NCBI GenBank assembly: GCA_044892525.1
Contig: CM097886.1
Span: forward strand, 183,198,312-183,262,311
Source: Schmidtea polychroa
Lineage: Eukaryota
Length of the DNA: 64,000 bases
Reading direction: 5' to 3'
The translations under genes and the position numbers were made by a program. Under the pieces are notes generated by a model. The model did not search any database. It saw nothing but the letters and a program-made list of their open reading frames with translations, and was not told where the DNA came from. Shown here in pieces: positions 3,476-47,856 of this stretch; position 1 is the first letter of the stretch; every line of letters begins with the position of its first letter.

Positions 3476-5007
3476 TTAATTGAAAAACATTTTAGTCCTA
3501 GTGACGATGCCAGCCTTACAGAAGGGGCATTCAAATAACTCCATGGAGCAAACATTACATGTCAAATGGCCGCATTGGAATCCAATTTCCACATTATTAT
3601 CTGAGCAAATTTGGCACATCTAAATTGCAATAAATCAATACAAATTCATCATATAATCTTACTGGTATTTCCTTATCATGTTCATTTCCTTCATTATCAG
3701 GTCTGGCAGTGTTTCTGTGACATTTCTCGATCTCCTCCTTAGCAACAATGTCTGTGCACGCATCAATTATCCGCTGGCCACGTGACGTCCTCTTATAAAT
3801 GTCACCGCCCAATGAAATTATCATTTTAATAGCTGAGATTAATTTCCTTTTTGAATTTGCCTAGAAATCGATCAATGCGATAAATCAATAATCAATCAAT
3901 ACATTATTGGCAATCGATATTTTCTCCAATAATTGTGTCAGCGCACATTTGCCGCTTTCATCCTCACCATCGAATTCCTTTGATTCAGTGATCAATGCGT
4001 TCACCAGTTCCATTTCTCCCATTTGAATTGCAATTTGGAGAGGAATTTGATTCCTTATGTTTCGCAACATGACAAATTTCCCTTGATTTACCGAATCCAA
4101 TAATTTCCATGCAAATTCCATCTTCCTTTCTTGCAATATAAATGTGAATAAATTTTCACCGTTTCCAAATGTTCTCGGTGCCGATATTTCCGTTTGTATC
4201 AAATGGTCAAATAGCTCGATATCATCACTATATACAGCTTTGTAAAGGAGATTCTCTATAACCGACTGCTGCAATATGGAACTAGATTTATTGAATAGTA
4301 ATCTTATTAGGTTAGCTCCACAAATCTCGCATGATTGGAAGGTATCCTTTGATATAGCTGACCGCAAAAAATTGTCAGGCAAAAGCTCAATCAATGCTTT
4401 TGCATATGAGAACCACTGATTTAGGAAAGCCGTTTGAAAATCATTTGAAGTGAAATTTGTCAATCTCGGCTGATTGGACACGAGTGCAAGCATTAATCTG
4501 ATAAATTGATTTATTATCAATGATTTATTAATATATTTCAATAAATTCTACTTTTCACTTCCAATATTCGATGCCAATTGGAATACAGTGATCCCATTGG
4601 TTGATTTGACATTGGCATCTGCTCCGTGTGCAATCAATATATTTGTGATATCGATTAATTTATTCAAGTTCTAAAATTGATATTTACAAGCCAATCAAAA
4701 TATATCATTACATCATCATTGATATCAATTGGTGGCTCGACAAGCATCTCAAACAATGGAGTGCTTCTCAAATTGTTAACACTGTCAACCTGTGCTCCAG
4801 CATTGAGTAGTGAACTGCACATTTTTGGTTTCAGGCATTTCACCGCGAGATGCAGCAGTGAATTGTTGTCACCATCATGAGCATTCGAACTACTTAAATC
4901 GAGTCGTTCGAGAAAACACGGAAAAAGAATTCCATGAAATTTCATTGACAATGTTAACGCGTTTTCATAGCAAGTCAAAGAAATTATTGATTGTGCAAAT
5001 GGAATAA
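3476..5007 (-). CDS. Ankyrin-repeat + C-terminal C3HC4 RING protein, 3' exon cluster (Mind-bomb-like RING; putative E3 ubiquitin ligase), copy 1
   Basis: Exons 5007-4712, 4670-4552, 4497-3903, 3860-3663 and 3619-3476 join in frame across GT-AG introns of 41, 54, 42 and 43 nt. Ankyrin motifs: NSLLHLAVKC..LLNAGAQVDSVNNLRSTPLF, LIAHGADANVK, QIPLQIAI. Last exon: MCQICSDNNVEIGFQCGHLTCNVCSMELFECPFCKAGIVTRTKMFFN* (RING). Confidence 0.88.
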
Positions 5008-7685
5008 CTGAAAATAATGAAATTCATTAATATTAATTGAATCATGTGTCTTTTATGGCTCATTACACATCCCATTCATTTACTGCTTTAAAAAAATTGT
5101 TAAATTTAAGTTATGCAAAGTGATTTGATCAGTTATTATTAATTTATAATAATAATTAAATAAAAAAATAATGGGAAAATATTTTTAATTCCAGAATTTA
5201 AATTTAAACAAAATAAGTAAGAAATGAAAATATTATTTACATTATAAAAAATCCAATAAATACACGAAAGTAAAAATCTTAAACATTGTGAAACATTGCA
5301 AATTCATTCAATTTTTTAAATAGGTCAACTTAAAAATTTATAGATTTTTCGATTTTCAAGGTTTTAACGAAAGTTCAATATTAATATTGATTACTTTGAT
5401 TCTCCCGGTAATTTTATGGAATCGACACCAGCGTAATCTGAAACACAGCTTATGACATTTTATATTTTTGAATGGCAACTAGTGTTTCCAAATTACCCAA
5501 ATTACAATTCTATATTAAATGCGTTTATTCATTGCAACGCAAAAAATCAACACACAGGTAAGTTTTTATGTTTATATAATATACACGTATTTTTTTTATT
5601 TTTACATTATGGATGAGTTTATTCAATGCATCGGGTTTTGTGACAATTTTCTGTGATTTTCTGTGTATAAAGTTTGTGATTGAATTGAATATTTATGCGC
5701 GTTCATTTGATTAATTTATTGTGGGTAATGATTCCAATGGCTGTCTGTCCACAATTATATTTATTAAACCCGATATTATTCTAGCTTTTGTTTTACTATA
5801 TTGAAATTTAGAATTAAACTTTTTGTAACAATTAATTTATCAAAAATTAAAATTTTATTTTTCAGTTTTTGTTATATTTTTACATTTTTATTGGTTAATA
5901 AGAATTTGCAATTTTAATTTCAAGCTTTTACAGCAATTCCTGATAAATCTCTTTTTAATACTTTTTCAAAATTTAAACTTCTTTGAATAAGCTAAATTAT
6001 ATTTAATTGTTTTATTAAACAATCATGAGTTATTTTCTGGTTTCCTTATAATGATTTGCGGCTTCCTGGAAATGGTCTCATAGAAATCTGGATTCAACCA
6101 GATAAAGATTTTTTCAAACTGCCATCATAATTATTGTAAGCTTTTTCAATTTGTTTTTCATTTGTTATTATTGTTATAAATTATTGAATATATGTTTAGG
6201 AATTGTGATGTAAGCCTTTATGATACGCTCGTCTATGTGTACTAGTGTTATTGCATGTATACATATATTTGACCTACTTTTTTAATAACTTTAAATATAC
6301 ATTTCAGCAGAAGACACAAGCCGTTATGATGATGCGAGTCTGACCTAAATAATATTTGAGTTGACCTACATAATATATAAGGCCAAAACAGCCTCAGCAG
6401 GTCGATCAGTGGTGCTGTCATGATGGAAGCATATCTACTACTTATAGCAGCCTTTATTCATTGGCAACAGGTGTAATCATTGTAGATCCTGATCCTGAAC
6501 CAATTAAAATATGGATCGCGTCTGTGTGCGCGTTGATTACACCTAACCGCGAAAGTTAACATTGTCTATAATATAAGTTGGTGTGCACACCACCTGAGGT
6601 GAGTCACCAATTATATGACAATGTTAACTTAATTTCATTTATTCAATTTTCCAAAAATCGTTTAAAGGTAAGTTTTTGCATTGAAGTAATTTTTAGGACT
6701 TGATTTTGATTTTATATAATTATGAGATCATTATTCAAGTTCTTAAATATTACTGTTAGTCAGCATTTATAATATTGATAATATATAACATTGATAATTA
6801 AATTTCAGGTGTTTTTTTAGGAATTTTATCGTATTTTATTTGGATTTATTTGGATTTATTTCGTAAAAATGTAAGTTAGATATTTTTATAATTATAAATA
6901 TGTAAAGTAATCACTAAACATTTATTTTTTAAAGACATTTAGTAAAGAATGGATAAAATATTTTTTAAGTTTTTGTAATCTTCTTTCGAATTTTGTCTAT
7001 TTCTGTAATTCTATGATTTAATTTATTAAAATTTACGATTTGCGATGTTTTTCCTGCAAATTCAAAGATGTCGAAGGATCTTCTTCAATATCTGTAAATC
7101 TAAAGAAATTTTATATTCTAAATTATTTTATAATTAAATCTTACGATGTATTTACTTCTTTTTCCCTAAAGCTCAACGTAGAGCAGTCGGAATCTGATTC
7201 AAAAGTTTTTTTGTACATAATTTTTTAAATAATTTTAAAATATTGATATGTTAATTATATGTTAATCAATCTGAATTTCGCATGAAAAACACTTTACTTA
7301 ATTTTGTATGTATTTTTCATTATGTGTGCTGTGTTTGTATGCTTAATTATTTTCTCTCACTTTTTAGATTCCTATAATAAATATGTTAAATTTCGCGGCA
7401 TTAAATTTCTACACACAGGTAAGTTTGTGTGTTCCTATAATATATATTTATTGATTTTTTTTTTAGATTATAGATAATGTTATATTTCGCGGTTAGGTGT
7501 ATTTGTTGGGATTGCTTGTTGAGTGCGCACACAGACACGAGGCAATGTTTGTGTGTTGGTGCTGGCTATTTATTATTTGTGGGTTCTGGAAGGACATTAT
7601 TATTGGTTGTTTGGATGAACTAATTGGATCGCTTTTGAATATTGATATTTTGTTTGGTTCATAAAACTTGCTAATGGTTAGGGCT

Positions 7686-8073
7686 AATAAATCAGGAATG
7701 TGCAAAGGTGGATTTGCCGGAGGTGATGCTTCATGAGCTGTGGTGCTCTCAATTGCTGGGCGCATTCTAGACATGGAGGTTTGACAGATTATTTGATGGC
7801 AATACGAACAGGACGATATTACAGGTTTATAACCACAGCGCAAAGGAGAATTTGTTCGAGATATTAAAGAACAAATGTGTTTCATTGCTCTTGTTGTTGA
7901 GCAAGCAATGCAGGCTGCTGCTTTATCATCGCTTCCTGATGAGTTATGAACTACCAGATGATCAATTTATAACCATTGGAAATGAAATATTGAGATGTCC
8001 AGAAGCTTTGTTACATCCATCGTTCTTGTGAATGGATATTGTTGGTATTCAGGAGGCAACTTATGACAGCATT
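7686..8073 (+). pseudogene. Actin pseudogene fragment with a large internal deletion
   Basis: NKSGMCKGGFAGGDAS*AVVLSIAGR (actin [27 protein letters not shown]) jumps to LTDYLM.I...Y.F.TTA.R.IVRDIKE and [43 protein letters not shown]. It has stops and frameshifts. Confidence 0.92.
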
Positions 8074-8129
8074 ACATTTTCTGCAGGACTAAAAAGATAT
8101 GATTTGATCCTTCCGTAATGCTTCTAGAT

Positions 8130-10529
8130 CAGGGGTGCCCACTAATTTTTCTAGGAGAGCTACATTCACATCCAAAATGTGTATGCGATCTACTTTTTTA
8201 ATACTTACATAATATTTACCTACAATGCAATAAATTCATCACAATAAAACAAATATATGTCAAAATATGGAAAATTAAAGTATATAACTATTTATTATAA
8301 AAAAATGTAACTTAGGAAATCAAATTTAATGAAAATTATTTTTATATAGAACTTTTCGATGTTGATGCTCTACATTGGGTTGAATCCACTAGATTTTTGT
8401 AGTTTGGGATATAAGTGCTAAGACAACTTCTTAGGCTGGATTCCAAATGGTCATCTGTTAATGTTGCTCGGTACTTTGACTTTATAATTTTCAGATTGTG
8501 AAAAAGCAGAATCACATAAATAAGTTGAACCAAAACATGATACTAAATTTTCGAAGCATTTTTTCAAGTTTGAATATTTATCCTCTGATAGATATTTCCA
8601 TACATTTGCTTCGGAAGATCTTGATTTAATGAAGATATCATTTTGAAGTGTGATTATTTCCATTTCAAGTATAGGGATATCCATTTTAAACAAAGTTGAA
8701 ATTGAATCTGCAACAATTTCTGGTTTTATTTTTGGATTAAACGGAAAGGACATAAATGCAGCCACAATTTCAAGTTTCTTGGAGTCTTGAAAACGTCTCT
8801 CGAACTCTAAAACCAAAATTTTGATCTGTTTCGCATATCTCGTAATATTAAAGTTGACATTTTCAGATTCTTTTAATTGTGACAACATATTTGGAAAATA
8901 ACTTAAATTTTTGTCTTCTATTTTGGTAATAAGTAAATGAAGCTTCTGTATAAATGCATTGATTGAACTTATCATATCGAATATCAATTTATCCTTACCT
9001 TGTAAATCGAGATTTAATTCATTCAGAATTGCAGTAATATCTACTAAAAATGCCAAATCCAAGAGCCAAACATCATCTTCCAATTGCTTGAACTCATCAC
9101 CTCTTGCGGCAAGGAACAACTTAATCTCAGAAAGCAAATCTCTAAATCTTTGTAAGAATTTTCCTCTACTTAGCCATCTTACATCTGAAGGCATCAGTAA
9201 TTCAGTAGGACCTTCGCTATTACTTTCTTCAATTTGTAATTTGAAAAGTCGTCTCTGAAGACTTCTTGCACGAATCGAGTTAGCAATTTTGAATGTTATT
9301 TCCATAATATCTCTCATATTCAGAATTTTAGCACACAAGGCTTGTTGATGAATAATACAGTGGTAGGAAAGAAAATCTGGGAATTCACAATCATTCCTAC
9401 AATATGCTATAAATCCGTTGTGACGCCCTGTCATAGCTGGTGCGCCATCTGTTGTTATCGATACAAGCTTACAAATTTGGAGCTGAATGCTGTTGGCATA
9501 AGCTTTAAAATTCTGAAATATATCCTCACCTCGAGTTTTACTTTTGAGTGGTATAATTGTTAATAATTCTTCCTTCGTAGAAAAATCTTTAAAGACCATT
9601 CGAATAAAAATTATAAGCTGCGAAATATCAGCCGCATCAGTTGATTCGTCTGCTTGCAATGAAAATGCGGTACAATTTCCTATGTCTAACATTAACTGAT
9701 TTTTTAAATTGGAACTTATTTCTTGGACTCTCCGTGTAACTGTATTACGGGACAATTGCATATCAGTAATAGCAGAAATTATATCTGATTTATTTTTAAA
9801 ATCACAAAATAATGATTCTGCCGCTTCTAAAAATGCTTCTTTTACAATTACTCCATCACTAAAAGATTTCTTATTTTTTGCCAGAATGTAGCTTACCGGA
9901 AAGATGCAGCTGTAGCTGACTTTGATTTGGATGTTAACTTCGTAAAAAATGACTGTTGAAAAGAAATGCATGTTTTCAGTTCCATGATTTTAGACTTGCG
10001 TAGTTCACTGTCAAGTGGATAATCAACTGCAAAAGTCTTATGAATTGTCTTGAAATGCCTTTCCAAATTCCCTCTTTTTGGTAATGAAATAGTAGCTTTA
10101 CAAATTAAGCAACAACATTTACCTTTAATCATTACAAAAAAGTACTCCTTCTCCATTTCTTCGCTATAATGATAAGTCTTGGCTTTTTAATTTAGCATTT
10201 TTAAACAAAATTAATTTAACAAAAAAGCTTAAGAAAATTTTTCACTTTGTTACACCAACCAAAATTAAATTTAACTAAATAAACAAAATTAAATTAAACT
10301 AAATTAAACTAAATAACATTTTGGAAATAGTGAAATCAAAATTAAAAAATGTTATTTAGTATTACCATAGAAATGGAACACAGAACATGAAAATTGGCAA
10401 AAAATTTAAGCATAAAATAGAAATTTTATATAAAATCTAAATTTATATAAAAAATATTTTTATGAAGATCTACTAAAAAATCCTTCGCGATCTACCGGTA
10501 GATCGCGATCGACCTTATGGGCACCCCTG
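8130..10529 (-). mobile_element. Full-length 2.4-kb Buster/SPIN-type hAT DNA transposon; transposase broken by two frameshifts
   Basis: 12-bp TIRs CAGGGGTGCCCA / TGGGCACCCCTG. Perfect 8-bp TSD TTCTAGAT (8122-8129, 10530-10537) with central TA. ORFs 10156-9893, 9971-8451 and 8533-8342 give a GTF2IRD2-like transposase (CLIC..RHF..IH, LQADESTD, TTDGAPAM, HCIIHQQ, VRWLSRG, GSTYLC.S.FS). Confidence 0.95.
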
Positions 10530-10781
10530 TTCTAGATGTTCCCGTGGCATTGTAACCAATGACCAAATAATAACCAAATCAAACATTTCATTTGGCACTC
10601 AAAATAATTATTTCACAGAAATTATTTCTATTTTCTTTAACAAATTAATTAAAAGTTTTAGTTTGATAAAGTTTCACATCAATACAAGTATTAATATCGA
10701 AATAATAAAAGCAGATCGATTGCATATTAATTTAAATTAAATCAATTAATTAATTAATCAATTAACTAATAAATAATTTAC

Positions 10782-11552
10782 CATTTTCATTTCCGGAATA
10801 TCGATTAATATTCTGTAAATAATAGAAATATAAAATTCAAATCAAATAAATTGTGACATTTCCTCACCTCAACAGATCTCACAACATCGGCACCCCGGTT
10901 CACCAGTTGAGCACAAACATTTACCATCCCTCGAATAACTGCACAGTGTAGGCCAGTCAACCCCATCTATATCTCACATAATTATTCAATCAATAAACAA
11001 CAAATCTCACAAATCCAGCATGATCAATATCAATTGATCGATCTATCAAATATTCACAATTGTCCTCCAATCCACTCGCAATCGCCTCATGCAATGGAGT
11101 TTGTGAATACTAAATAATGCCAATATATCAATATCAATATTGAATACTCTATTGAATTACTTTGTTTTGTGTATTGGTATCGATCTCAAATTGCTGCAAT
11201 ACATTGATGCATTTCCTATGATGCAGCGAATGGGCCAAGGCCAATGCAGTCCCCATTGTCTACAAATATATTGATTTGATCATTTCAATAAACACATACT
11301 TCATTATTTGCATTGATATCTACAATGTCCTGATTATCTAGTATAAATTTGGTCATATCGGCATCATTATCAGATATTGCTGTGTGTAATATGGTGAAAT
11401 TGACCTTGATAATAAATAAAATTAATTATTGATTTTGCATTATTCTGATGCACCTTTTGTCGTGATTCCATCAGAATCATTCGTTCTTGTATTTCTTCTT
11501 GTATTTCCACGAATCCTTTTTCCTTTGCTTTGTCAATGGCCTTGATCCATAA
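10782..11552 (-). CDS. Ankyrin-repeat exon cluster (middle), one repeat per phase-0 exon, copy 1
   Basis: Exons 11552-11454 (LWIKAIDKAKEKGF...), 11404-11300 (VNFTILHTAI...), 11259-11161 (TMGTALALA...), 11109-11011 (YSQTPLHEAIASG...), 10966-10868 (MGLTGLHCAVIRG...GADV) and 10812-10782 (NINRYSGNEN+G). GT-AG introns of 49, 40, 51, 44 and 55 nt. Absent from the ORF track. Confidence 0.85.
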
Positions 11553-12434
11553 CTGAATGATGAAATCAATGCTGATTTAATCAATTTCATCTCAAATTAG
11601 TTAATAATAATAATAATAATAATAACAATAATAACAAAAAACAGGTAAATGATAAGGTAAGCATTTGCTGCAAAATCTTTATTAAGTGAGAAAATTATTT
11701 ATATAAAATAATTCAATTCGATCTTTCATAATTTTGCTTCAATGTTGAAATGCTTGCATGATTTCCTTTTAAAATTCATTTCTGATTTTTATTTGTTCAA
11801 AAATTGATTAATTAAAATTACTGAAATGTAAAGCATAAAATATTTACGTGTTGACATATTTGAAAATATGTCCTACCAGTCAACTCAGGAAATTATTCAC
11901 TATAAAATAGCGCTTAAAAGATTTCAAATATCTCAACTGGTTCTACTGTAACTGATGTAAGCGCTTAGGAACACTAATCCCCTAGCCATGGGATATATTA
12001 GTCGCTATCATATTATTAATATATTATTATCATATCAGACTATTATCATATTATTAATTTTGATCCCAGAAATTATTTGTCGGAAACATTTTTAAAAACC
12101 TGTTTGTATGTATCCAATAGTAACAAATTATTACTATTATTATTATAAGAACTTATTTTAAAAATTTTACCACAGATTTCCATTGACATTATATTTATTT
12201 AAAAGCTTGACTATGAATCAGTAAATATATCGATATAATTGATATGCACGAATTTTCGACACCGCCTTTTTCAATTGAATTATTATTATTAATATGATTT
12301 GACATAATGAAATAACAAAATTCATAAATGTATTTTATCACAATTTTTAATTATTTAAACAAATTTAATATTTTGGTAAATGGTTTTGTGTGATTAATGC
12401 TTTTCTAATCACAACAATTCACTCCTCCTAATTT

Positions 12435-13330
12435 GATTGCTCTGCTGGCTATAGACGATCAACTGATAAATTCTCTAATACATAGCTTGAAATATTTTGG
12501 CTGCTTTTCTAATAGACGAAACGGACCATTATATGGAGCTTCTAATGATTTCCGTACATCTTTTCTCATGTACACGAATTCACAATCCTTAATATATTTA
12601 TTGATCGTCATACAATCTTGCAATGGTCTTTCGATTATTCTGAAGCTCTCAATAATTTCTTTAAATTGATATGGAGAAGCTTCTATTTATGAATTAAAAA
12701 TAATTCCTGGTACAGCAAGATCACATTCAAATGCTTTTTGTGTCGGAGAATAACCTGCTGAATCCCGACTGTTCCTTATCGTTAACAGTACCTGAGGTAA
12801 AACGTCAAACTTTTAATTTAATTTTATTCATTTTATTAATTTATTATTAATTTTATCCATTGAAGCCATTTCTTGAGATTTTAGTGTCTGATGGAATTCT
12901 GCAACTTTACAATTGGCTTGGGAATGATAAGCGCATGTTTGATTTGTATTTATTTCAAGAAAGTTGAACATATACTGGAATAAAGAGTTTGTAAATTGAT
13001 CTGTTACAATTTCAGATGGGATTCCATATCGGGAAATCCCCACTTCAATTAGTGATTTTGCCACAGTTTCTGAATCTATATATTAAATGGCCAATACCTC
13101 AGGGTAATATGTTTAACTATCGATCATTGTTAGTAGATAGGACTTCTCGTTATTTGCTAGGAAGATTTGCAATTCTGCTTTGATATGACGATATACTTTT
13201 GATTTTAAGCAGGAATCGCGTTGCTGACACAACATCTGGACATCCTTTGTCATCTTGTGTCATGTATATGAACTCAACATCAATATCTTGGCCATTCGTA
13301 TTTCTGGATGAGCGACATATTTGGGTATAT
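12435..13330 (-). mobile_element. Decayed Ty3/gypsy integrase remnant
   Basis: AHPEIR..K..L..Y...M.KDV (zinc-binding region), SRYGIPSEIVTDQ...F...AYHSQAN..V.EFHQTLK (core), LEAPYNGPFRLL and SVDRL.PA (C-terminus); many stops. Confidence 0.85.
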
Positions 13331-13333
13331 AGA

Positions 13334-13935
13334 CAGTACTGTGCGAATTAGTGTGAATATGAAATAATTTACATGTTTTATCATCTAGTTATACGACCAT
13401 GTCAAAATTAGCTCCAGTTTAGTTTTACTGTTCTTATATTTGTTGTGTAATAACGTATTGGAGTTTACAGACGTGTTGTTATAGATAATTTAGTAAATTC
13501 TATTGTGCTTCCTTTAATTTTTTACTAAGACTATCCAAACTATTCTAATCTTTGTTTCTTTCTTATTTTAAAAGATGAATGTTTCTCCCAAGAAGAGCAC
13601 AAAAATTGTTACCTTAAGTGAACACATCAATGTATCAAAGAGATATTGCCAAAGAGTGTGGTGCGAGTTTAGGAGCTGTAATCAACATTTTAAAACAAAA
13701 GAAGGAATTTGAGACGGTTTAGGCGAATAGAAAAGGAAAATGTGGAAGGAAGAGGAAGACAATAATAGATGAATTTATAATAGGAGTAAGTAAATTGAAT
13801 TCTAGAGAAAATAACCAGCAACTTCAGAAAGGCTTAGCACATGGTGGAGTTATTATTCCCGATTCCACAGCTTGACAATGGCTTATCAAAGTTAGAACAA
13901 GTCTAATAGACCTCAAAAAAAAAACAATTATTGAG
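13334..13935 (+). mobile_element. 5' fragment of a Tc1-family transposon
   Basis: Begins CAGTACTGTGCGAA (Tc1-like TIR start). From 13575 it reads MNVSPKKSTKIVTLSEH..YQRDIAKECGASLGAVINILKQ...RKGKCGRKRKT (paired-HTH and GRKR linker), with frameshifts and stops. Confidence 0.75.
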
Positions 13936-13999
13936 CTTTGTTTAAAAAAGTGACAACGAAAACTTTACGACAGCTCATATCAATAGAATCATTAAACGC

Positions 14000-14455
14000 G
14001 ATAAGGACGATGTTTTGATCTGGTTATTGTATAAAGGTACCGGATCCCTTGTGTCGGTTGAAGGCATGATAAAGGCGCTTTGTTTAATTTGTAGAAATAT
14101 CGTAGCTGTTTTTAAAGATTATAATTTAAAACGGCATTATTTTCAAAAATATGTTTCCACGTATGATGATTACGACGGAATGTATCGTAAAGATAAAGTA
14201 GCTGGACTTAAGGAAAATCTGTTTTCTCAACAAACATTTTTCAAGAGAATTGTCACTCAAAATTATTCTGTCGTAAAAGTCAGTTATGTGGTAACAAATA
14301 TAATTGCAAAGAAGTCGAAACCCTTCACAGATCGCAAATTTATTAAGTAATGTTTGGAAAGTCTAGCTGACATTATTTGTCCAGATAAAAAATCAGACAT
14401 ATCAAAAATCAGTTTATCGCAACTAACTATAGGAGGACGAATTAAAGATATTCAG
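14000..14455 (+). mobile_element. N-terminal fragment of a second Buster/SPIN-type hAT transposase, cut by the gypsy LTR
   Basis: KALCLICRNIVAVFKDYNLKRHY...SYVV..IIAKKSKPFTD..FIK*CLE..A.IICPDKK...KISLS..TI..RI.DI. Confidence 0.85.
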
Positions 14456-14470
14456 GACACCTTTGTCCAT

Positions 14471-14695
14471 TGTGAGGCGTTTTGTAATTTGTATTTAAAT
14501 AATGGTATGATGTTGTGCTTGTTTGATTGTATGCTGAAATCCTTACTTATACATTAATTATTATTTTTTAGAAACTCATAAAACAAATTAACGTTATAAT
14601 TTGTTTTAATAATATTTGTGTTTTTATAATAAACGTGTTTTAGTTATGGATTCTATTAATACCCGTAGCTCTGTGGCTAATATGGCGACGACGAT
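14471..14695 (+). mobile_element. Putative 5' LTR (14471-14682) and tRNA-Ser(GCT)-like primer-binding site (14683-14695) of the gypsy element
   Basis: Starts TGT, contains AATAAA, ends ..TAATA (CA expected). Followed by TGGCGACGACGAT, close to TGGCGACGAGGAT, the complement of a typical tRNA-Ser(GCT) 3' end. No second LTR to confirm the boundaries. Confidence 0.6.
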
Positions 14696-16843
14696 TGCAA
14701 ATTTTATCAAGCCACAAGAAACATATGACATGAATTCAGACGTGGAAGATTTTATCTTAGAAACGGAACGATTCTTCGAGATGACAAATATTGTCGATGA
14801 ATACAGAAGCAAATTCGTCAAAGCTTTTCTATCAATCAATTCAACGAAGAAATATGAGTTGACTAATGAAACTCTGCATTATACAGAAAGATTAAGAAAC
14901 GCTTTTGCTAAGAACAGAAGTCTTATCGATGATCTCAACGAAGCGCTAAATTATCGTCAAGGAAATGAGGCTGCCGAAGAATTCTGCTCAAAAATTGAGA
15001 AACTTGCAAAAAATATTTTGAAGCATAAACTTGATGAAGAAGAACTAAAGAAATTTTTGCTATTCAATTCGCTTGAAGATAAAGAAGTTAAAAAAGATCT
15101 CAAAATGCAAGATTTAAAATCATTTGATGAAATGAAAGAAAGATTAAAGAGACACGACCAAGTTTCAAAAGAAATTAATGTATTTCATGCTGATGTAGCT
15201 TCAATGAATAAAACACAACGCTATGCTGATGCTGTTAAGAAGAGCTTACCAAGATATAGTTATGATAACAGATCAATTCGAGAACGAGAAGCTAATCCCA
15301 GATTCAAAGATGAATATAAAAGAGAACCTCAACATAATCCAAGATTCAAAGGCGATCTTACCAGAGAACATCGATATGCTATTTCAAATGAATGAAAACC
15401 TATGAATAGAAGTAAGCCTTATAATACCAGGGAATTTCATTCGCGAGATCATGTCCAAACAAATCAAATTTTGCGATGTTGGGCGTGCCACGAAGAAGGT
15501 CATAGAAGATCTGAATGCCCCAATATTCAATGTGCCCATTGTAAAAGATCTGGACATTTCAAACATCAGTGCCATGAGTTATTTCCAGGCAGACGTCGAA
15601 AATTCCATAAATCAGTGGCTGCATTCGGTGACGAGGATTCAGAGGCTGATTTTGAGTACCCAAATGGGAATGCTCCACCACACGAGGAGGTGATCGGAGC
15701 AATAAATTAAAGGTAATTAATGATATGAGTAAGGGTTGTATGATTTTGAATGATTGTGATAGGTTGAATGATTGTGATAGTTTGAATGATAACTGTTGTG
15801 ATGGTGTTTTTGATTATAGAAATTATATTAATATATACATTAATAAATTTTGTATGGATGAAGTTTTCAAAGACCCACCCCTAACTTCTAATGAACTAAA
15901 TGTTCTTAATCGTGATAAACGGAATGATATAATAGTATACGATAAAATGCAGGGAAGGCCCAGTGTTACCGTAATGATTAATAATGTAAAATTAGTATGC
16001 CTATTAGATACTGGAGCTAAAATAAGTGTGATTGATTATAATATTTTTAAAATACTTGGAAATTTGAATATGACTACAAGTAATCTGAAATTAAGATGTG
16101 CGAATTATAGCCCGATTGAAATTTGCGGTAAAACTTTATTAAATGTAAAAGTTGATAAAATTTCTGATATTAAAAAAGTAGAATTCGTTGTAGCCAAAGA
16201 TATAAACCCAAAGTTGATAGGAGGTATAGATTTTCTCGAAAGATTTGGAATGCAATTGCAAATAGAAAACCGTACAGACGAAATAAATACAATTATGGAA
16301 AATTCATTTAATAACCACATAAGTGAAGATAAGATTATAAATAATTTAATTTCCACGTTTGACGGTATTTTTATGAAACATAAATGGGATGTTGGAAAAA
16401 CCGAACTATTAAAGCATGAAATACTTACTAAAGGTTATAATAAACCCAAGACGACAACCTATACATTTAATAGAAAAAATTGAAGAAAATATTCAAGAAA
16501 TGTTGAAATATGGCATTATATATGAATGTACATCTCCTTGGAATTCTCCATTAGTATGTGTTAAAAAGAAAAACAGTAGTGATATAAGAATATGCTTGGA
16601 TTACCGTGCTTTAAATAATATAACCGAAAGACCTATTTTTCCCATTCCAAATACTGATGAATTATTAGATATTCTTGACGGAGCAAAGTTTTTCTCGACA
16701 ATTGATTTAGGCAATGCTTATAATCAAGAAGAACTCGATGATGCATCAAAATTGAAAACAGCATTTCCGACAAAAAGCAAGCAATATTACTTTAACAGAA
16801 TGCCATTTGGAATAGCAGCCGCACCAGCAACATTTCAAAGACT
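14682..16843 (+). mobile_element. Ty3/gypsy gag-protease-RT, 3'-truncated by the Penelope insertion, copy 1
   Basis: Gag with an in-frame TGA at 15393-15395 and two CCHC knuckles (CWACHEEGHRRSEC, CAHCKRSGHFKHQC). Pol in the -1 frame with protease LLDTGA and RT SPWNSPLVCVKKK..RICLDYR.LN, FSTIDL, RMPFGIAAAPATFQRL. No YxDD, RNase H or integrase follows. Confidence 0.93.
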
Positions 16844-18270
16844 TCTCGTTTCCGCCAATGGAACATTAGTAAAAAGACTACACACATCAAACGAAACCAT
16901 CATTTCATCATCAGAACTTTTCTTCAGTGCAGCAATGAATGAAGCAAATTCAAAGCTATCCTTACATTCGAACTCAGACGCCATTAAAGGTTTTAATAAC
17001 CCATCCAAAAATTTGGCAATTTTATATTGAGCGGTTCCTACCATCGATAACACTGGTCTCATAGACATACCTGCTTTATGTACTTTTGGAAGACCATAAA
17101 ACTGGTTTATATACAACGCCTGATAGTTTTTGTGAGTTTAAATATAAAAGGAATATGGTGAGAGGATTAGTGTTTCGTGCTTGGTCACTATCCTCCACGT
17201 TTGCTAATTCAGTAAAAAGTATTGATGTATTAGTTGAGTTGTTACTTAAAAATGGCTACTCTAAATCTTCTCTTGAGAAGATGACAAAAGTGACCGTGGA
17301 TAAGTTAATGTTTAAATCTGATAACGTTGGTATGTGTACGTCTGAATCTGAGGTACCTATTGATCCTGAGGAAAGAACTATGTTAAATTCGGAAAGTGAC
17401 AAGAATCGATCCAATCGCATGGAGCAGAAATATGTGTTAGTATTGCCTTATTCGGAGGGTTTCAGAGAATTTAAACATAAAATTCTCAAATATGTAGACA
17501 AGGATCAATTCAGGATTGTTTCCACTTCTTGCAAAGTTAGCAGTATGTTTACTAGTAAATGTCCAACGCCAATTGGTTTGTGTTCTGAGCTTGTGTATCA
17601 ATTTTCATGTAATGGGTGTAATGCCATATACATTGGAGAGACTGCCCGTCATCTCTGCACCCGAGTTCTTGAACACTGTCGACCATAAGGATTGACTAAT
17701 ATTAGTAATCATGTTAGGAAATGTGTCAGTAAAAAAATAGGTATCTCTGATTTTAAAATTATTTCAAAAGGTTTAAGTAATTATTGGGAACGAGTAACTT
17801 GTGAGTCATTGTTGATTAGATATTTAAATCCAAAAATAAATGATCAAGTTGCCCGTTCCACGGAGAATTTGAATGTGTTTAAGTAATTGAAGGATGAAGG
17901 TTGGGAGTCGTGTTTGTGGTATAATTATGTTTGTGTTTTGTAAACTATGTAATTTTTTTTAAATTTCTTAACTTTATGTTGAATGTTAAATGTTATTAAA
18001 TTAAAATTTAATTTTAAAATAATATGTATGTGGGGCTATGTAAAATATGGTTTGGTTTTTTAAAATATTGTTTTTGAAATATTTTTTTTAAAATTTTTGA
18101 TACAGTTTGGAGATGATTATTATTAGTTAATTTGTTTAGATATTGCATATTTTATGTCTTATTATTGATTATCCAGATTGCGGCCTGACGAAGATTGTTG
18201 TACAATTGAAATATATCGCGTTTATGTTGAATTTATTGAGTTGGCATTTCTGTATTATTAAATCATTGCC
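16844..18270 (+). mobile_element. Penelope-like retroelement with an inverted 5' RT segment, copy 1
   Basis: Minus strand ~17108-16844: FYGLPKVHK..MRPVLS..GT..Y.IAKFL..LLKPL...VSFDVCSLFTNVP (PLE RT). Plus strand ~17100-17886: TGLYT..DSF...KYK.. thumb region, then GIY-YIG YIGETARHLCTRVLEH and CESLLIR..NPKIN. The 3' boundary is approximate. Confidence 0.9.
18181..18220 (+). ncRNA. Candidate minimal type-I hammerhead ribozyme in the Penelope 3' region (stem I weak)
   Basis: CUGACGA-A-[GAUUGU UGU ACAAUU]-GAAA-UAUA-UC: catalytic core, 6-bp stem II, palindromic minimal stem III. Stem I has only 2 clean pairs. Confidence 0.5.
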
Positions 18271-18470
18271 ACGTTTTTTTGATTATTAATAATAATAATA
18301 TTAATTATTATTATTATAACAATCACTAAATGATGGCATCGATTTAAATATAAATAAAACGACAATCCAATATTAATAACTTTTTTTTAAAATTAAGAAA
18401 TAATGAAATAACAAGTGATTATAAAGTAAAATTATTTATTGGTATATTTTGGATAGAAAAATAGAAATCG

Positions 18471-18871
18471 TTAATGAATTGCATAATTATATCTTTCTTG
18501 AATGTTGCTTTTTAAATTGCGTCTTTCAGAAGCTAGAGATATTCGTTTGAATGAGAATGCAAATGCCTTTATTGCTCTATTGATGCTAAATGTGCTAATG
18601 TTCATTGGAATTATTTCATAAACTTGCGTTCGAATTGACTCTGATGTTATTGAAACATCCTCAAGAAAAAACCTCACGCAAATTCTTTTTCAGGCGTTAA
18701 CAGTTTTCCTTCGTGGCTTTTCGTTGATTCAATCCTTCCACCTTTTTGTATACACGGATAACACTCGCAACTGTTTGGTAATTTATATTTAATTAGTTTG
18801 AAATTTCTTTTATGCTTTAGCTGGGATATATTTATCGTAAACAAATAGCTCATCGAATCTGACAGCTTCAT
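18471..18871 (-). mobile_element. IS630/Tc1-superfamily transposase fragment (winged-HTH region)
   Basis: ..GKLLTPEKE..FFLEDVSITSESIRTQV....ISTFSINRAIKAFAFSFKRISLASERRNLKSNIQERYNYA resembles the region before the DDE domain of IS630-like transposases. Confidence 0.6.
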
Positions 18872-18934
18872 ACTTACAGAGATTTACATTCACCCTTAAT
18901 ATTTTGATTTTGACATCATTATTGAAAAAAGAGA

Positions 18935-18982
<48 letters not shown>
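18935..18982. repeat. (AAT)16 microsatellite; (AAT)7 in copy 2 at 52323-52343
   Basis: Counted directly; the 27-nt difference matches the offset change 33388 to 33361. Confidence 0.95.
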
Positions 18983-19108
18983 TTTAAATCAATAAATAAT
19001 AATAAATTAATAAAATAACTTGTCAATATATTATATAATTCAAATAAATCAATAATTATTCCATTTCCACAAAGTTTATGAAATATTTCAACATAAAATC
19101 GATCGCCT

Positions 19109-22100
19109 TCACTCAAATGCGAAATTTAAAAAATTTAACAAATCGATCTGACGCTTCATAAAATATTTATTTAAAATTCATAAATAAACCAATCAGATAT
19201 TTTCTCACCGATTTGTCGTAAACCGTTTTCTTCATGATCGATTCGACAAACAGATGATGGCCTTGATTGACAGCCAATTCCAGAAATGACAGCTCGCCCT
19301 AATCAATATCAATACAAATCCAAATAATTATTTGACCTTACGATTCTGCGCTGCCCATTGATAATGTGAGCAGAATTGAATCTCTTGAACCCGCTCATGT
19401 GCCCGTGAGTGATGCAGCGATAAAGGACGCACTGAAATTATTTATTTATTGATTTATTCAAATAATCAGCTCACTTCTTTCATTAAATTTGCATTTTTGT
19501 CCATTTTTGCTGTCAGCAATTCAATTGCATTATTGATTTCCTATTGGTGAGAATATTAATTATATCAATCAATAAGTCAATCAAACTTTATCATCAATTG
19601 GTTTGTCAAGGATTAATTTAATAATCTTATCAGCATTGGACTCGATTGCTCCCTCCAGCACAGCCAATCCAGGCTAAATATCAATTATTAAACAATCAGA
19701 ATATCACAAATTTACATAAATATTCTGCATTATGAAATCAGAAGATTTGAGCAAATCACCAAATGCGATTGCATCATCCCGTTCAATGGCAAGAAATAAC
19801 TGAAATATTTATTCAAATTGATTCATAATGAAATAATTCACACTTTCGCCGCATGAGTCAATAATTCCACGCAATCAGCACGATTATATTGCTTTGCATA
19901 ATCCAGCGGACTCTTTCCACCCTAAATAAATAATCCAATCAAAATATCCGAATCAGCGAATCATTTAAACATCCCCATTCACAAACAGATCATTAAAGCC
20001 CTGTGGCAATAATTGGGTCTAAAACCGACACTGCAAAACCGCGTGCAAAGTGTAAATACCCGTGAGATATCATGCTAAAGAAATAGTTGAGAAATGGCAA
20101 ATCTGATCAGAATTACTAGCCAATGGAATTGCCGATTTGCATTTATTAATGAATTCTGTCAGTGGAGATCTTCAAATGAAGTCGACATTTCAATATTGCT
20201 TCATTCATTTCAGACATTTACTAAGACTGCATAAAATTCTCCAGTGCAAGGAATAAATTGCCAGAAAAGCTGCTGGAAAAGCTTTTCATTCATTTTGAGG
20301 CGTTGCAGAAAATATTTCAAATAGCAAAAATTATTTCTGTTGAGAAGTGAAAAAGTGAATTAAAAATAAAATCGATAGCAAGGAAATAGCCAATTAAAAT
20401 GCTGAATTTAATGTGAGAAGTAGAGAAATGCAAATTTACAGGAAATATTTTACATATCAAAACGTAAACATTATTTGTGATGAACATCTGGCCTGCACAA
20501 TCAATATTCAGTGGCCATTGTTCTGCTTGCATTGCAATTATTGGCCTGATCTGTTTCACGGTAATTTTGATACAAATGCTATGTAAATATATAATTATTA
20601 TTTTTAGCTTTGTTTTTATCATTATCATTAAATTATTTGTGAAATGTCCGAAATATTGGCAAATACAAATGAGAAACCCGATGAGTATTCTGGCAATGAA
20701 AGCGATGAACATTATGACAGTGAATATATCATACAATAGTGACAGCGACACTCCTGACAATGAAGGAGCTTCTTCCTCCTCAGAAAGCGAGAGTGAATAT
20801 GAGAAATTTACAAAATAAAGGTGCGAATGTTACAGTTGATGAGCAACTATTTCCAACCAAGCTCGATGCTTTATAAATCATGACTTTGTTCTCACAATTT
20901 AGAAAGGTAAACCGAACTAAAGTTATTTTTAAACATAAATTCTCTTTCATTTTATAATAATATATCTGACCGAATGGCAAGGAAATGTAGCGTCAAATCT
21001 GGGCCTAGAATATGGCCGCTTCAAGTACCTTTCAATATGCTAGGCTTAGCTGCAATGAATGCCTCGATACCATATAAGGGAACCGCAGCAGATAACATAT
21101 CAATATGCTAGGCATAGCTGCAATGAATGCCTTGATACCATATAAGGGAACTGCAGCAGATAACATATCAATATGCTAGGCCTAGCTGCAATGAATGCCT
21201 CGATACCATACAAGGGAACTGCAGCAGATAACATATCAATATGCTAGGCCTAGCTGCAATGAATGCCTCGATACCATACAAGGGAACTGCAGCAGATAAC
21301 ATATCAATATGCTAGGCATAGCTGCAATGAATGCCTCGATACCATATAAGGGAACTGCAGCAGATAACATATCAATATGCTAGGCCTAGCTGCAATGAAT
21401 GCCTCGATACCATATAAGGGAACCGCAGCAGATAACATATCAATATGCTAGGCCTAGCTGCAATGAATGCATCGATACCATATAAGGGAGCTGCAGCAGA
21501 TAACATATCAATATGCTAGGCCTAGCTGCAATGAATGCCTCGATACCATATAAGGGAATAGCAGCAGATAACATATCAATATGCTAGGCATAGCTGCAAT
21601 GAATGCCTCGATACCATATAAGGGAATAGCAGCAGATAACATATCAATATGCTAGGCCTAGCTGCAATGAATGCCCCGATACCATATAAGGGAACTGCAG
21701 CAGATAACATATCAATATGCTAGGCCTAGCTGCAATGAATGCCTCGATACCATACAAGGGAACTGCAGCAGATAACATATCAATATGCTAGGCATAGCTG
21801 CAATGAATGCCTCGATACCATATAAGGGAATAGCAGCAGATAACATATCAATATGCTAGGCCTAGCTGCAATGAATGCCTCGATACCATATAAGGGAACT
21901 GCAGCAGATAACATATCAATATGCTAGGCTTAGCTGCAATGAATGCCTCGATACCATATAAGGGAACAGCAGCAGATAACATATCAATATGCTAGGCATA
22001 GCAGCAATGAATGCCTCGATACCATATAAGGGAACTGCAGCAGATAACATATCAATATGCTAGGCCTAGCTGCAATGAATGCCTCGATACCATATAAGGG

Positions 22101-23787
22101 AACTGCAGCAGATAACATATCAATATGCTAGGCCTAGCTGCAATGAATGCCTCGATACCATATAAGGGAACTGCAGCAGATAACATATCAATATGCTAGG
22201 CCTAGCTGCAATGAATGCCTCGATACCATACAAGGGAACAGCAGCAGATAACATATCAATATGCTAGGCCTAGCTGCAATGAATGCCTCGATACCATATA
22301 AGGGAACTGCAGCAGATAACATATCAATATGCTAGGCCTAGCTGCAATGAATGCCTCGATACCATATAAGGGAACTGCAGCAGATAACATATCAATATGC
22401 TAGGCCTAGCTGCAATGAATGCCTCGATACCATATAAGGGAACCACACCAGATAACATATCAATGTGCTAGGCCTAGCTGCAATGAATGCCTCGATACCA
22501 TATAAGGGAACAGCAGCAGATAACATATGCTGCTCAATACAAAATCAGAAAGCGTGTTACCAGTAAATATATCGACACCTTCAAATAGCCTCAATCTCAC
22601 GCGTAAATGGCGCATGATTGGATATTGCAATAATAATAACATCACAAATAATTATTTTCATTGCTTTTAATGAATTATTTCCAGTTTAATAATGAATATT
22701 ATATTATAATTATATTTATTTATTATTTGATAATATGGCAGCGCATGTAAGGCTACTTTATAAAGGTTATTTGCTAATCAATCGCTTCTGCTTGGGGAGC
22801 AAGATATTATATTTGATGGCCCATTGAAGCCATTATGACTGTTGCTGGTAGCAATTGCTATGATTGTTATTGGCCGTTCTAGTGTTAGTTATCTAAATTG
22901 ATAAATTATTGGCTGTTGGCAATGCAATTTGCTGCGGCGGCTGGTAAAGGGCAAGATCATATGATAATGCTGTCACATCGATATTGGCCATATCGGGCCT
23001 GCAGGGAGCTATTGCATTCTCACCCCGCTAACGGTTCCATTGACACCTCATTCTGTGCTCTCTTGCCTCTCACTAGAGCTCTCTGAGGCAGTTCTCAATG
23101 GCATTTCATTCATTGCTCCTTATGCAATCCATTTCACATATTCAATTAACCAGATCGCAACTCACCAGATTTAATTGATATTTCATTATATAAAATGTTA
23201 ATGTTTACTTTTGTTCGGCAATCGATTCGGCATTTCCGCTGCAGCAATAATTTCAATATTTCTGAATGCCCATAGCTGCTAGCATAATGAATTGCTCTGA
23301 ATCCCTGCAATTTATCAATTAATTAATTATTTGCAATGATTATTTACCCCATTGCTCTCAGATTCCACATCGCAGTTGCTGTCAAGCAATAATTTCAATA
23401 TTTCTGAATGCCCATTGCTGCTAGCATGATGAATCGCTCTCCATCCCTGCAATTTATCAATTAATTATTTATTTGCAATGATTATTTACCCATTTGGTCT
23501 CAGATTCCACATCGCAGTTGCGGTCAAGCAATAACCTGGCAATATCAACAAATCCCTCACGGCAAGCAATGTGAATGGGCAACCGGCCCTGAAATCAGAA
23601 ACATTAACCCAATAATTCACATTGCCAATCAATCTCACATAATCATCAACAATCCTATGCATAAATTCTCCCCTCAAATTATCCCTGACGCCCTCCACAT
23701 TTCCCCTCATCAAGTGCTCCTTGAAACATTGAAAATCCCTGCAATGCAAATTATCCAATGCAAATCATAATCAATATTTCACCCCAT
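19109..23787 (-). CDS. Ankyrin-repeat 5' exon cluster, copy 1 (about 310 aa if it ends at the TGA at 19109-19111)
   Basis: Proposed ATG at 23787. Exons 23787-23783, 23738-23639, 23588-23490, 23446-23348, 23304-23209, then a 3.3-kb intron, then 19921-19844, 19799-19716, 19673-19587, 19540-19475, 19431-19342, 19298-19209 and 19147-19109. All GT-AG and in frame. Motifs GRLPIHIACREG, GWRAIHHASSNGHSEILKLLL, GGKSPLDYAKQYN, FLELAVNQGH. Confidence 0.8.
20644..22664 (+). mobile_element. Internally deleted piggyBac transposase remnant hosting the 68-bp satellite, copy 1
   Basis: Acidic N-terminus (MSEILANTNEKPDEYSGNESDEHYDSE), KGANVTVDEQLFPTK (first catalytic D), D.MARKCSVKSGPRIWPLQVPFNMLGLAAMNA (after the third D), and decayed cysteine-rich tail TRKW.MIGYCNNN. 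TIRs not identified. Confidence 0.85.
21033..22528 (+). repeat. 68-bp tandem array, 22 units
   Basis: Unit CAATATGCTAGGCCTAGCTGCAATGAATGCCTCGATACCATATAAGGGAACTGCAGCAGATAACATAT; 1496 bp = 22 x 68. Confidence 0.98.
23244..23527 (-). repeat. 142-bp tandem module (99-nt ankyrin exon + 43-nt intron), 2 units
   Basis: Periodic GCAATAA at 23244, 23386 and 23528. Confidence 0.95.
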
Positions 23788-36864: not shown

Positions 36865-38396
36865 TTAATTGAAAAACATTTTAGTCCTAGTGACGATGCC
36901 AGCCTTACAGAAGGGGCATTCAAATAACTCCATGGAGCAAACATTACATGTCAAATGGCCGCATTGGAATCCAATTTCCACATTATTACCTGAGCAAATT
37001 TGGCACATCTAAATTGCAATAAATCAATACAAATTCATCATATAATCTTACTGGTATTTCCTTATCATGTTCATTTCCTTCATTATCAGGTCTGGCAGTG
37101 TTTCTGTGACATTTCTCGATCTCCTCCTTAGCAACAATGTCTGTGCACGCATCAATTATCCGCTGGCCACGTGACGTCCTCTTATAAATGTCACCGCCCA
37201 ATGAAATTATCATTTTAATAGCTGAGATTAATTTCCTTTTTGAATTTGCCTAGAAATCGATCAATGCGATAAATCAATAATCAATCAATACATTATTGGC
37301 AATCGATATTTTCTCCAATAATTGTGTCAGCGCACATTTGCCGCTTTCATCCTCACCATCGAATTCCTTTGATTCAGTGATCAATGCGTTCACCAGTTCC
37401 ATTTCTCCCATTTCAATTGCAATTTGGAGAGGAATTTGATTCCTTATGTTTCGCAACATGACAAATTTCCCTTGATTTACCGAATCCAATAATTTCCATG
37501 CAAATTCCATCTTCCTTTCTTGCAATATAAATGTGAATAAATTTTCACCGTTTCCAAATGTTCTCGGTGCCGATATTTCCGTTTGTATCAAATGGTCAAA
37601 TAGCTCGATATCATCACTATATACAGCTTTGTAAAGGAGATTCTCTATAACCGACTGCTGCAATATGGAACTAGATTTATTGAATAGTAATCTTATTAGG
37701 TTAGCTCCACAAATCTCGCATGATTGGAAGGTATCCTTTGATATAGCTGACCGCAAAAAATTGTCAGGCAAAAGCTCAATCAATGCTTTTGCATATGAGA
37801 ACCACTGATTTAGGAAAGCCGTTTGAAAATCATTTGAAGTGAAATTTGTCAATCTCGGCTGATTGGACACGAGTGCAAGCATTAATCTGATAAATTGATT
37901 TATTATCAATGATTTATTAATATATTTCAATAAATTCTACTTTTCACTTCCAATATTCGATGCCAATTGGAATACAGTGATCCCATTGGTTGATTTGACA
38001 TTGGCATCTGCTCCGTGTGCAATCAATATATTTGTGATATCGATTAATTTATTCAAGTTCTAAAATTGATATTTACAAGCCAATCAAAATATATCATTAC
38101 ATCATCATTGATATCAATTGGTGGCTCGACAAGCATCTCAAACAATGGAGTGCTTCTCAAATTGTTAACACTGTCAACCTGTGCTCCAGCATTGAGTAGT
38201 GAACTGCACATATTTGGTTTCAGGCATTTCACCGCGAGATGCAGCAGTGAATTGTTGTCACCATCATGAGCATTCGAACTACTTAAATCGAGTCGTTCGA
38301 GAAAACACGGAAAAAGAATTCCATGAAATTTCATTGACAATGTTAACGCGTTTTCATAGCAAGTCAAAGAAATTATTGATTGTGCAAATGGAATAA
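36865..38396 (-). CDS. Ankyrin + RING 3' exon cluster, copy 2
   Basis: Same exon structure at offset 33389; three amino-acid differences seen (K>N, Q>E, D>G). Confidence 0.88.
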
Positions 38397-41072: not shown

Positions 41073-41460
41073 AATAAATCAGGAATGTGCAAAGGTGGAT
41101 TTGCCGGAGGTGATGCTTCATGAGCTGTGGTGCTCTCAATTGCTGGGCGCATTCTAGACATGGAGGTTTGACAGATTATTTGATGGCAATACGAACAGGA
41201 CGATATTACAGGTTTATAACCACAGCGCAAAGGAGAATTTGTTCGAGATATTAAAGAACAAATGTGTTTCATTGCTCTTGTTGTTGAGCAAGCAATGCAG
41301 GCTGCTGCTTTATCATCGCTTCCTGATGAGTTATGAACTACCAGATGATCAATTTATAACCATTGGAAATGAAATATTGAGATGTCCAGAAGCTTTGTTA
41401 CATCCATCGTTCTTGTGAATGGATATTGTTGGTATTCAGGAGGCAACTTATGACAGCATT
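41073..41460 (+). pseudogene. Actin pseudogene fragment, copy 2
   Basis: Same sequence at offset 33387. Confidence 0.92.
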
Positions 41461-41516
41461 ACATTTTCTGCAGGACTAAAAAGATATGATTTGATCCTTC
41501 CGTAATGCTTCTAGAT

Positions 41517-43916: not shown

Positions 43917-44168
43917 TTCTAGATGTTCCCGTGGCATTGTAACCAATGACCAAATAATAACCAAATCAAACATTTCATTTGGCACTCAAAATAATTATTT
44001 CACAGAAATTATTTCTATTTTCTTTAACAAATTAATTAAAAGTTTTAGTTTGATAAAGTTTCACATCAATACAAGTATTAATATCGAAATAATAAAAGCA
44101 GATCGATTGCATATTAATTTAAATTAAATCAATTAATTAATTAATCAATTAACTAATAAATAATTTAC

Positions 44169-46716: not shown

Positions 46717-46719
46717 AGA

Positions 46720-47321: not shown

Positions 47322-47385
47322 CTTTGTTTAAAAAAGTGACAACGAAAACTTTACGACAGCTCATATCAATAGAATCATTAAACGC

Positions 47386-47841: not shown

Positions 47842-47856
47842 GACACCTTTGTCCAT

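Follow-up and report, generated by a model that had tools for sequence, protein, structure and literature searches.

A predicted ankyrin-RING ubiquitin ligase gene of Schmidtea polychroa, split by three transposon-filled giant introns and present in two near-identical units

In the plant XB3/XBAT ankyrin-RING ligases, one polypeptide has ankyrin repeats at its N-terminus and a C3HC4 RING at its C-terminus (PMC3596331). The same order, an ankyrin block followed by a C-terminal zf-C3HC4_3 RING, is found in MIB1 and MIB2 of the Mind bomb family, and in the ankyrin-SOCS box (ASB) and poxvirus ankyrin/F-box-like proteins an ankyrin array picks the ubiquitination target for a cullin-RING complex on which the protein docks via a SOCS or F-box-like motif. 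Here we describe a minus-strand ankyrin-RING gene in 64,000 nucleotides (nt) of Schmidtea polychroa DNA (assembly GCA_044892525.1, contig CM097886.1, forward-strand positions 183,198,312 to 183,262,311; this whole stretch is henceforth referred to as ‘the window’ and its first letter is position 1). The exons of this gene are separated into clusters by three giant introns laden with mobile elements and satellite DNA, and the whole arrangement occurs twice in the window (Table 1). We consider it probable that the exon clusters form one protein-coding gene, present as two adjacent near-identical copies, which encodes an E3 ubiquitin ligase of the RING type with 925 amino acids (aa) in copy 1 and 1024 aa in copy 2.

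Read on the minus strand, the locus appears as a succession of short open ankyrin-like segments, and the spacers between them are short GT..AG stretches that contain stops. The exons of copy 1 were rebuilt and checked by script, which gave a model of 22 exons running from 23787 to 3476 in which every intron is of the GT-AG type and the joined coding sequence (CDS) of 2778 nt translates into 925 aa with no internal stops. Eighteen of the 21 introns are 40–55 nt long and the other three, at 3287, 7656 and 5774 nt, are the giant introns A, B and C. Copy 2 contains the same exons with 0–4 differences each, keeps all of the splice sites and has three extra 99-nt ankyrin exons. Chance falls far short of explaining an open frame of 2.8–3.1 kb over 22 or 25 exons that is found twice in DNA with a GC content of ~30%, once in each copy. 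A preliminary description of this DNA had placed three minus-strand exon clusters here, with a phase-1 donor at 10781 facing a phase-1 acceptor at 5008 across a 5774-nt intron, an uninterrupted frame of 627 aa, a phase-0 donor and acceptor at 19208 and 11553, and products of about 925 and 1024 aa in the two copies. The rebuilt model reproduces each of these: the clusters were recovered in place, the splice-site phases agree, the 627-aa frame corresponds to residues 299–925 of the model, and the two lengths are exactly 925 and 1024 aa.

The view that the exon groups belong to one mRNA is supported by junctions shared with related predicted proteins and by a compact genomic relative. When 1.8 billion representatives were scanned by HMMER, the 220-aa exon being the query, a small specific family emerged above a background of generic ankyrin proteins. 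The family members are UniParc entries or proteins from short metagenome contigs, and only four of them lie within 425–1354 aa, in addition to shorter fragments. The proteins of the window itself were not found among the protein collections searched; one homologue search with the 220-aa exon returned no matches, although relatives exist, and a search of metagenome contigs with the family profile (alignment A2) returned only contig L003, a generic ankyrin match. The most informative alignment is that of P0003 (774 aa), which matches model residues 135–925 in a single BLASTP stretch at 59.7% identity and spans both junction B (at residues 298/299) and junction C (at codon 476 of the 925-aa model). 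In the multiple alignment, P0003 is nearly identical to the model on either side of junction B and continuous at junction C. Junction A is spanned by P0037 (614 aa), whose alignment takes in the N-terminal exon as well as the cassettes described below (model residues 3–268). In P0151 and P0001 the end of exon 16 is joined to the start of exon 18 with differing filler between, and this filler looks like intron read-through. The junctions which had been proposed earlier, 19209>11552 and 10782>5007 (P0003) and 23209>19921 (P0037), are each read through by predicted relatives.

Evidence of a different kind comes from L001, a contig of 4189 nt from a distant relative (25–39% identity, 31.6% GC), as here the genomic DNA was read directly and independently of any gene prediction. 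Within 4.2 kb and on one strand, this contig contains exons like those of clusters 1b, 2 and 3 together with the RING. Exactly at junction B its intron is of phase 0 and 42 nt long, and the exon that comes next measures 99 nt, as it does in the window. At junction C there is an exon of 31 nt whose donor is of phase 1, identical in length and phase to exon 17 of the window; an intron of ~958 nt then separates it from the equivalent of exon 18. Since the introns of L001 share their position and phase with introns B and C of the window, the latter are best read as old small introns that have been swollen by insertions. The absence of an in-frame start of its own in cluster 2 and the phase-1 start of exon 18 are also consistent with a single gene. 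Overall, we infer from these comparisons that splicing proceeds across all three of the giant introns.

The contents of the giant introns agree with the earlier proposal that they are filled with transposable elements. Intron A holds a 68-bp satellite array, the GC content of which is ~40% compared to ~30% in the background; its period is not a multiple of three, and the array is non-coding. In intron B, a long terminal repeat (LTR)-type retroelement remnant, antisense to the gene, comprises a gag-like region, a CCHC knuckle, an aspartyl protease and a partial reverse transcriptase, after which it is truncated; its open reading frame (ORF) is in four pieces (three interruptions), and no LTR pair was found when long direct repeats were looked for within intron B. 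Further hints in this intron are weak: Penelope-like matches at ~16.8–17.7 kb (GIY-YIG, E=0.12; RVT_1, E=0.03) and, at ~12.5–13.3 kb, integrase-like pieces that were seen by eye and for which Pfam gave no confirmation. The insert in intron C has terminal inverted repeats with termini at 8130 and 10529, is flanked by a perfect 8-bp target duplication (8122–8129 = 10530–10537), and contains a transposase that is 87% identical (E=8e-278) to the intact 624-aa protein P0162; on the basis of inverted repeats, duplication and transposase together, it is a DNA transposon of the hAT superfamily. The transposase frame is broken into three pieces in two frames. The 624-aa relative carries FAM200-GTF2IRD2-like and ZBED5 RNase-like domains, some relatives have a hAT dimerisation domain (PF05699), and relatives of the intronic element are spread across many animal phyla. 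A 39-nt inverted repeat pair (90% complementary, 886 nt apart) at 6538–7501, adjoining the hAT insertion, suggests a further small DNA element, and an 81-nt direct repeat pair (78% identity) lies at 5542 and 7403 in the same intron. All of the giant-intron insertions are present in both gene copies and hence are older than the duplication. In the history that we propose, a host with tiny introns (40–55 nt here) would have had three of the 21 introns of this gene inflated to 3.3–7.7 kb by a satellite array, retroelement remnants and a hAT DNA transposon. As a consequence of this inflation the short exons (mostly 66–105 nt) are strewn over 20 kb and the gene is invisible to ORF-based views.

From its N- to its C-terminus, the predicted protein comprises a 35-residue segment without a Pfam match, the cassette region of three (copy 1) or six (copy 2) near-identical ankyrin repeats, a longer degenerate ankyrin run, and a C3HC4 RING that makes up the last 47 residues. 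Exon pieces from all three clusters were matched by the Pfam models Ank, Ank_2 and Ank_3, and Ank_2 was matched in P0003 and P0037 with E=5e-30 to 7e-44; with its repeated 33-residue Ank motif, the product is an ankyrin-repeat protein. The last exon was matched by zf-C3HC4_3 (PF13920) at 33.7 bits against a cut-off of 27 (E=3e-8), and the relatives score 30–36 bits. In five relatives (P0003, P0037, P0001, P0151 and P0152) the Ank and RING models gave the only strong Pfam matches, the remaining ones being weak overlapping matches to RING models or isolated sub-threshold ones. An AlphaFold2 (AF2) model of P0003 is confident only at residues 375–715, all of which are helical repeats, and poor elsewhere; in a Foldseek search with this model, the MIB1 ANK domain came first and other ankyrin solenoids followed at similar scores.

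Among solved structures, the RING exon matched BIRC7 best (E=2.7e-7), followed by XIAP and by RING3 of MIB1 (E=2.9e-6). Its alignment with MIB1 RING3 likewise spans the full length of the RING. It aligns end to end with the RINGs of BIRC7 and XIAP, and all eight zinc ligands are kept in C3HC4 order and spacing, so that the frame ends in a C3HC4 RING as had been claimed for it. The eight ligands are invariant in alignment A2, and the aromatic residue that lies three positions from the C-terminus is also aromatic in six of the six A2 members. By sequence, then, the predicted RING is of the IAP or MIB1-RING3 type. The tail of an IAP-type RING takes part in dimerisation and in contact with the donor ubiquitin, and a protein with such a tail and its conserved aromatic residue would be a dimeric RING ligase with a substrate chosen by the ankyrin array. 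In the proposed mechanism, the long ankyrin solenoid would bind the substrate and the C-terminal RING would recruit and activate a ubiquitin-loaded E2, probably as a dimer; such ubiquitin-ligase activity with an E2 is a prediction from sequence similarity.

The locus resembles each of the described systems in part. MIB1 shares with it the domain order already mentioned, a RING3 that is among the closest solved RINGs, and an ANK domain that is the top fold match of the P0003 model, although this fold match is no better than those of generic ankyrin proteins. In contrast to Mind bomb, the window protein has one RING (in the last exon) as opposed to two or three, and its ankyrin region is much longer, N-terminal, and equipped with a cassette of variable copy number. 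Pfam gave no match to MIB-HERC2 or ZZ in the exon pieces of the window (E<=0.1) or in the five relatives (E<=0.01), and Mib repeats are absent from the window exons and from the same relatives. The lack of MIB-HERC2 and ZZ, together with the single RING, rules out a Mind bomb orthologue, in agreement with the preliminary description. The plant XB3/XBAT proteins have the same domain order as the window protein and fewer repeats; no plant sequence relatives appeared in the homologue searches, and membership of this family was rejected on the RING_XB3-XBAT31 model (PF24921), which scored 18.6 bits against a cut-off of 50. The IAP family (BIRC7/ML-IAP, XIAP and cIAP) provides the best matches of the RING exon (E=2.7e-7 to 2e-5), and the likeness extends to the end-to-end RING alignment, the eight zinc ligands and the aromatic residue near the C-terminus; however, the window protein is without BIR domains and would have an ankyrin solenoid as its substrate-binding part. 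With the ASB and poxvirus proteins it would share an ankyrin array that picks the target, and it differs from them in that it carries the RING itself; in the window exon pieces and the five relatives, Pfam gave no match to a SOCS or F-box domain.

The repeated unit of the variable ankyrin cassette consists of a 99-nt ankyrin exon and a 43-nt intron, which add up to 142 bp, a period that Tandem Repeats Finder (TRF) detected in copy 1; the arrays lie at 23238–23534 in copy 1 and at 57753–58475 in copy 2. When the five inner cassettes are compared, variation is seen at 10 of 99 sites in the exon and at 1 of 86 sites in the flanking intron (Fisher p=0.011), a comparison based on a small sample and to which gene conversion could contribute. 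All ten of the variable exon sites are nonsynonymous, with none synonymous, and they fall in codons 2, 7, 10, 11, 31, 32 and 33. Neutral decay does not produce a pattern of this kind, in which the exons alone vary, and only by replacements, next to introns that are nearly identical. The most variable repeat positions, 2, 7, 10 and 11, are the same in the nine repeats of the window and the four of P0037; in the register used here, exon residue 1 equals position 2 of the Pfam Ank model, and the variable positions lie on either side of the conserved core motifs. In designed ankyrin-repeat libraries, what we take to be six positions are usually randomised to make the binding surface, and five of the seven variable codons fall on these (chance, 5e-4); we regard this mapping to the binding surface as a lead. 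In ankyrin binders, such variable residues line the target-binding groove. The cassettes probably expand and contract by tandem duplication, and the pattern suggests that they are a fast-evolving recognition surface. Unlikely as we hold it to be at present, a more far-reaching reading would make them a recognition module by which a ubiquitin ligase generates diversity, with units exchanged unequally and changes confined to the residues of the target groove.

The window as a whole consists of tandemly repeated units of ~33.4–34.9 kb: positions 1–29059 match 33428–64000 at 99.35% identity, the match extends to both edges of the window, and more than two repeat units are possible. Differences in unit length are confined to two tandem arrays, the 68-bp satellite and the 142-bp array. 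Divergence between the copies is ~0.65% overall and 0.52% in exons, and in the collinear CDS 13 sites differ, 10 of them nonsynonymous and three synonymous. Four of these 13 differences lie within the 66 nt of exon 9 (19475–19540 and 52836–52901), and exons 12–17 are identical between the copies. Runs of N are present at 1104–1317, 2663–2793 and 34525–34730, the first and last of which are at equivalent unit positions. These features also bear on the alternative that the two copies are haplotypes, or a collapsed and re-expanded repeat, set side by side by the assembler, in which case the difference between three and six cassettes would be allelic. The high identity over ~30 kb that reaches both window edges, the N runs at equivalent positions and the restriction of length differences to tandem arrays all fit such an artefact, and we regard it as a substantial possibility, if less probable than a true duplication; it would leave the gene model unchanged and affect only the reading of the copy-number difference.

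Several observations weigh against the interpretation of the locus as one functional gene and are shared with two further alternatives. P0003, P0037, P0151 and P0001 are themselves gene predictions and might repeat the same modelling assumption. Introns of 3–8 kb may be spliced poorly where the genome mostly removes introns of 30–100 nt and where most of those in this gene are of 40–55 nt, and the sense-oriented hAT element could bring termination or cryptic splice signals. A usable cryptic acceptor, followed by an in-frame stop, lies 55 nt into intron B; the terminal exon that it defines would, if used, end at 19109 and yield a product of 312 aa with ankyrin repeats only, and no counterpart of this exon was found in P0003 or L001. 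The start codon is uncertain as well and could be Met1, with a 5-nt coding piece followed by a 44-nt intron, or the in-frame Met12. If the insertions broke an ancestral single gene, there would now be two or three transcription units or truncated isoforms, for example the ankyrin-only product and a C-terminal ankyrin-RING protein starting near exon 18, and the predicted proteins P0152 (468 aa) and P0001 (487 aa) do begin at or just before the equivalent of exon 18. However, P0152 starts exactly at the acceptor, as a truncated prediction likely would; cluster 2 needs an upstream exon, exon 18 has no in-frame ATG upstream of it before a stop is met, and the giant introns have canonical donors and acceptors, which both copies retain. 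We consider such fragmentation decidedly unlikely.

It is also conceivable that the gene is silent or recently dead, with a frame that has stayed open for no other reason than that little time has passed since the insertions and the duplication for disabling mutations to accumulate. The low divergence between the copies is compatible with this, and so are the density of mobile elements in the surrounding unit and the absence of the window proteins from the collections searched. The ratio of 10 nonsynonymous to three synonymous differences is near the neutral expectation and reveals no purifying selection since duplication, a count that is too small to interpret. Yet the frame of the intronic hAT element is already broken, whereas the 2.8–3.1 kb frame of the host gene is intact in both copies, as are all 21 or 24 pairs of splice sites, and variation in the cassettes is exonic and entirely amino acid-changing beside introns that barely vary. 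A dead gene is thus, in our view, very unlikely and the least probable of the alternatives, and a single gene with three spliced giant introns remains the preferred interpretation.

Further observations concern the surroundings and the relatives of the gene. The intergenic part of each unit contains additional mobile-element remnants at 25660–27617 and 30470–32487, both on the minus strand, one with RVT_1 and RT_RNaseH_2 pieces and the other a further hAT-like element, distinct from that of intron C, which has a BED zinc finger; the 33-kb unit thus holds a single host gene together with at least four or five inserted elements. Rfam gave no matches within the window. The tiny introns, the minority of large ones and a GC content of ~31% would also be compatible with, for example, bdelloid rotifers (PMC5916493). 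Relatives of the gene and of the hAT element co-occur in two metagenome samples (JGI 3300031718 and ENA ERZ27256860), which contain the intact 624-aa hAT relative (87% identity; L004, JGI 3300031718) and short ankyrin-RING contigs (L002, from the same JGI sample), and this suggests that a close relative of the organism studied here is present in the two samples.

Table 1. Positions of the two gene copies, the exon clusters and the intron contents in the window
Feature	Position	Strand	Description	Evidence
Gene copy 1	3476..23787	-	predicted 925-aa ankyrin-RING protein	GT-AG introns and unbroken frame
Exon cluster 1a	23209..23787	-	exons 1-5 (5-nt start piece, 100-nt N-terminal exon, three 96-99-nt ankyrin exons): 23787-23783, 23738-23639, 23588-23490, 23446-23348, 23304-23209	Pfam Ank; P0037 alignment
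Variable ankyrin cassette, copy 1	23209..23588	-	three ankyrin exons, 43-nt introns, 142-bp period	TRF
Giant intron A	19922..23208	-	3287 nt, phase 0	junction bridged by P0037
68-bp satellite, intron A	21032..22528	.	22 copies, 96% matches	TRF
Exon cluster 1b	19209..19921	-	exons 6-11 (66-90 nt each): 19921-19844, 19799-19716, 19673-19587, 19540-19475, 19431-19342, 19298-19209	tblastn matches of P0003 and P0037
Possible alternative terminal exon	19109..19153	-	45 nt (14 codons and TGA)	sequence reading
Giant intron B	11553..19208	-	7656 nt, phase 0	junction bridged by P0003; L001 equivalent 42 nt
LTR-type retroelement remnant, intron B	14616..17030	+	antisense to gene	Pfam zf-CCHC, gag-asp_proteas/RVP, RVT_1
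Exon cluster 2	10782..11552	-	exons 12-17 (99, 105, 99, 99, 99 nt, then 31 nt with phase-1 donor): 11552-11454, 11404-11300, 11259-11161, 11109-11011, 10966-10868, 10812-10782	P0003 matches, 60-91% identity
Giant intron C	5008..10781	-	5774 nt, phase 1	junction bridged by P0003, P0151, P0001; L001 equivalent ~958 nt
hAT transposon (GTF2IRD2/ZBED5-like), intron C	8130..10529	-	2400 bp, gene-sense orientation	inverted terminal repeats, target duplication
Exon cluster 3	3476..5007	-	exons 18-22 (degenerate ankyrin solenoid and RING): 5007-4712, 4670-4552, 4497-3903, 3860-3663, 3619-3476	P0001, P0152, P0003 align, 57-71% identity
Last exon	3476..3619	-	C3HC4 RING at extreme C-terminus and stop codon	zf-C3HC4_3, 33.7 bits
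Gene copy 2	36865..58728	-	25 exons, predicted 1024 aa, three giant introns of 4441, 7630 and 5772 nt
Variable ankyrin cassette, copy 2	57724..58529	-	six ankyrin exons	unit comparison
68-bp satellite, copy 2 intron A	54391..57043	.	~39 copies

An ankyrin-RING ligase gene with transposon-inflated introns is an ordinary kind of gene, and the consequences for annotation are correspondingly general: in a genome of tiny introns, a few such inflated ones suffice for a 925-aa ligase to be overlooked or broken up by ORF scans and gene finders. Several database relatives are apparently mis-modelled. P0015 consists of the C-terminal part of the family fused to retroelement-like sequence, and P0151 apparently reads through the intron after its equivalent of exon 16, in addition to the start of P0152 at the exon-18 acceptor. 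The truncated or chimeric P0152, P0001 and P0015 suggest that the same mis-annotation has already befallen paralogues, which may have similar insertion-laden introns.

The gene defines an unnamed ankyrin-RING family, apparently small and lineage-restricted, that is neither MIB nor XBAT. For this family, the cassette pattern is a cheap and testable hint of diversifying selection on the substrate-binding face of a ligase. On the unlikely reading of the cassettes as a diversity-generating module, the family would be a set of fast-evolving, immune-like or mobile-element-restricting E3 ligases in a small invertebrate, with a logic like that of other rapidly evolving restriction ligases, here built on an ankyrin scaffold.

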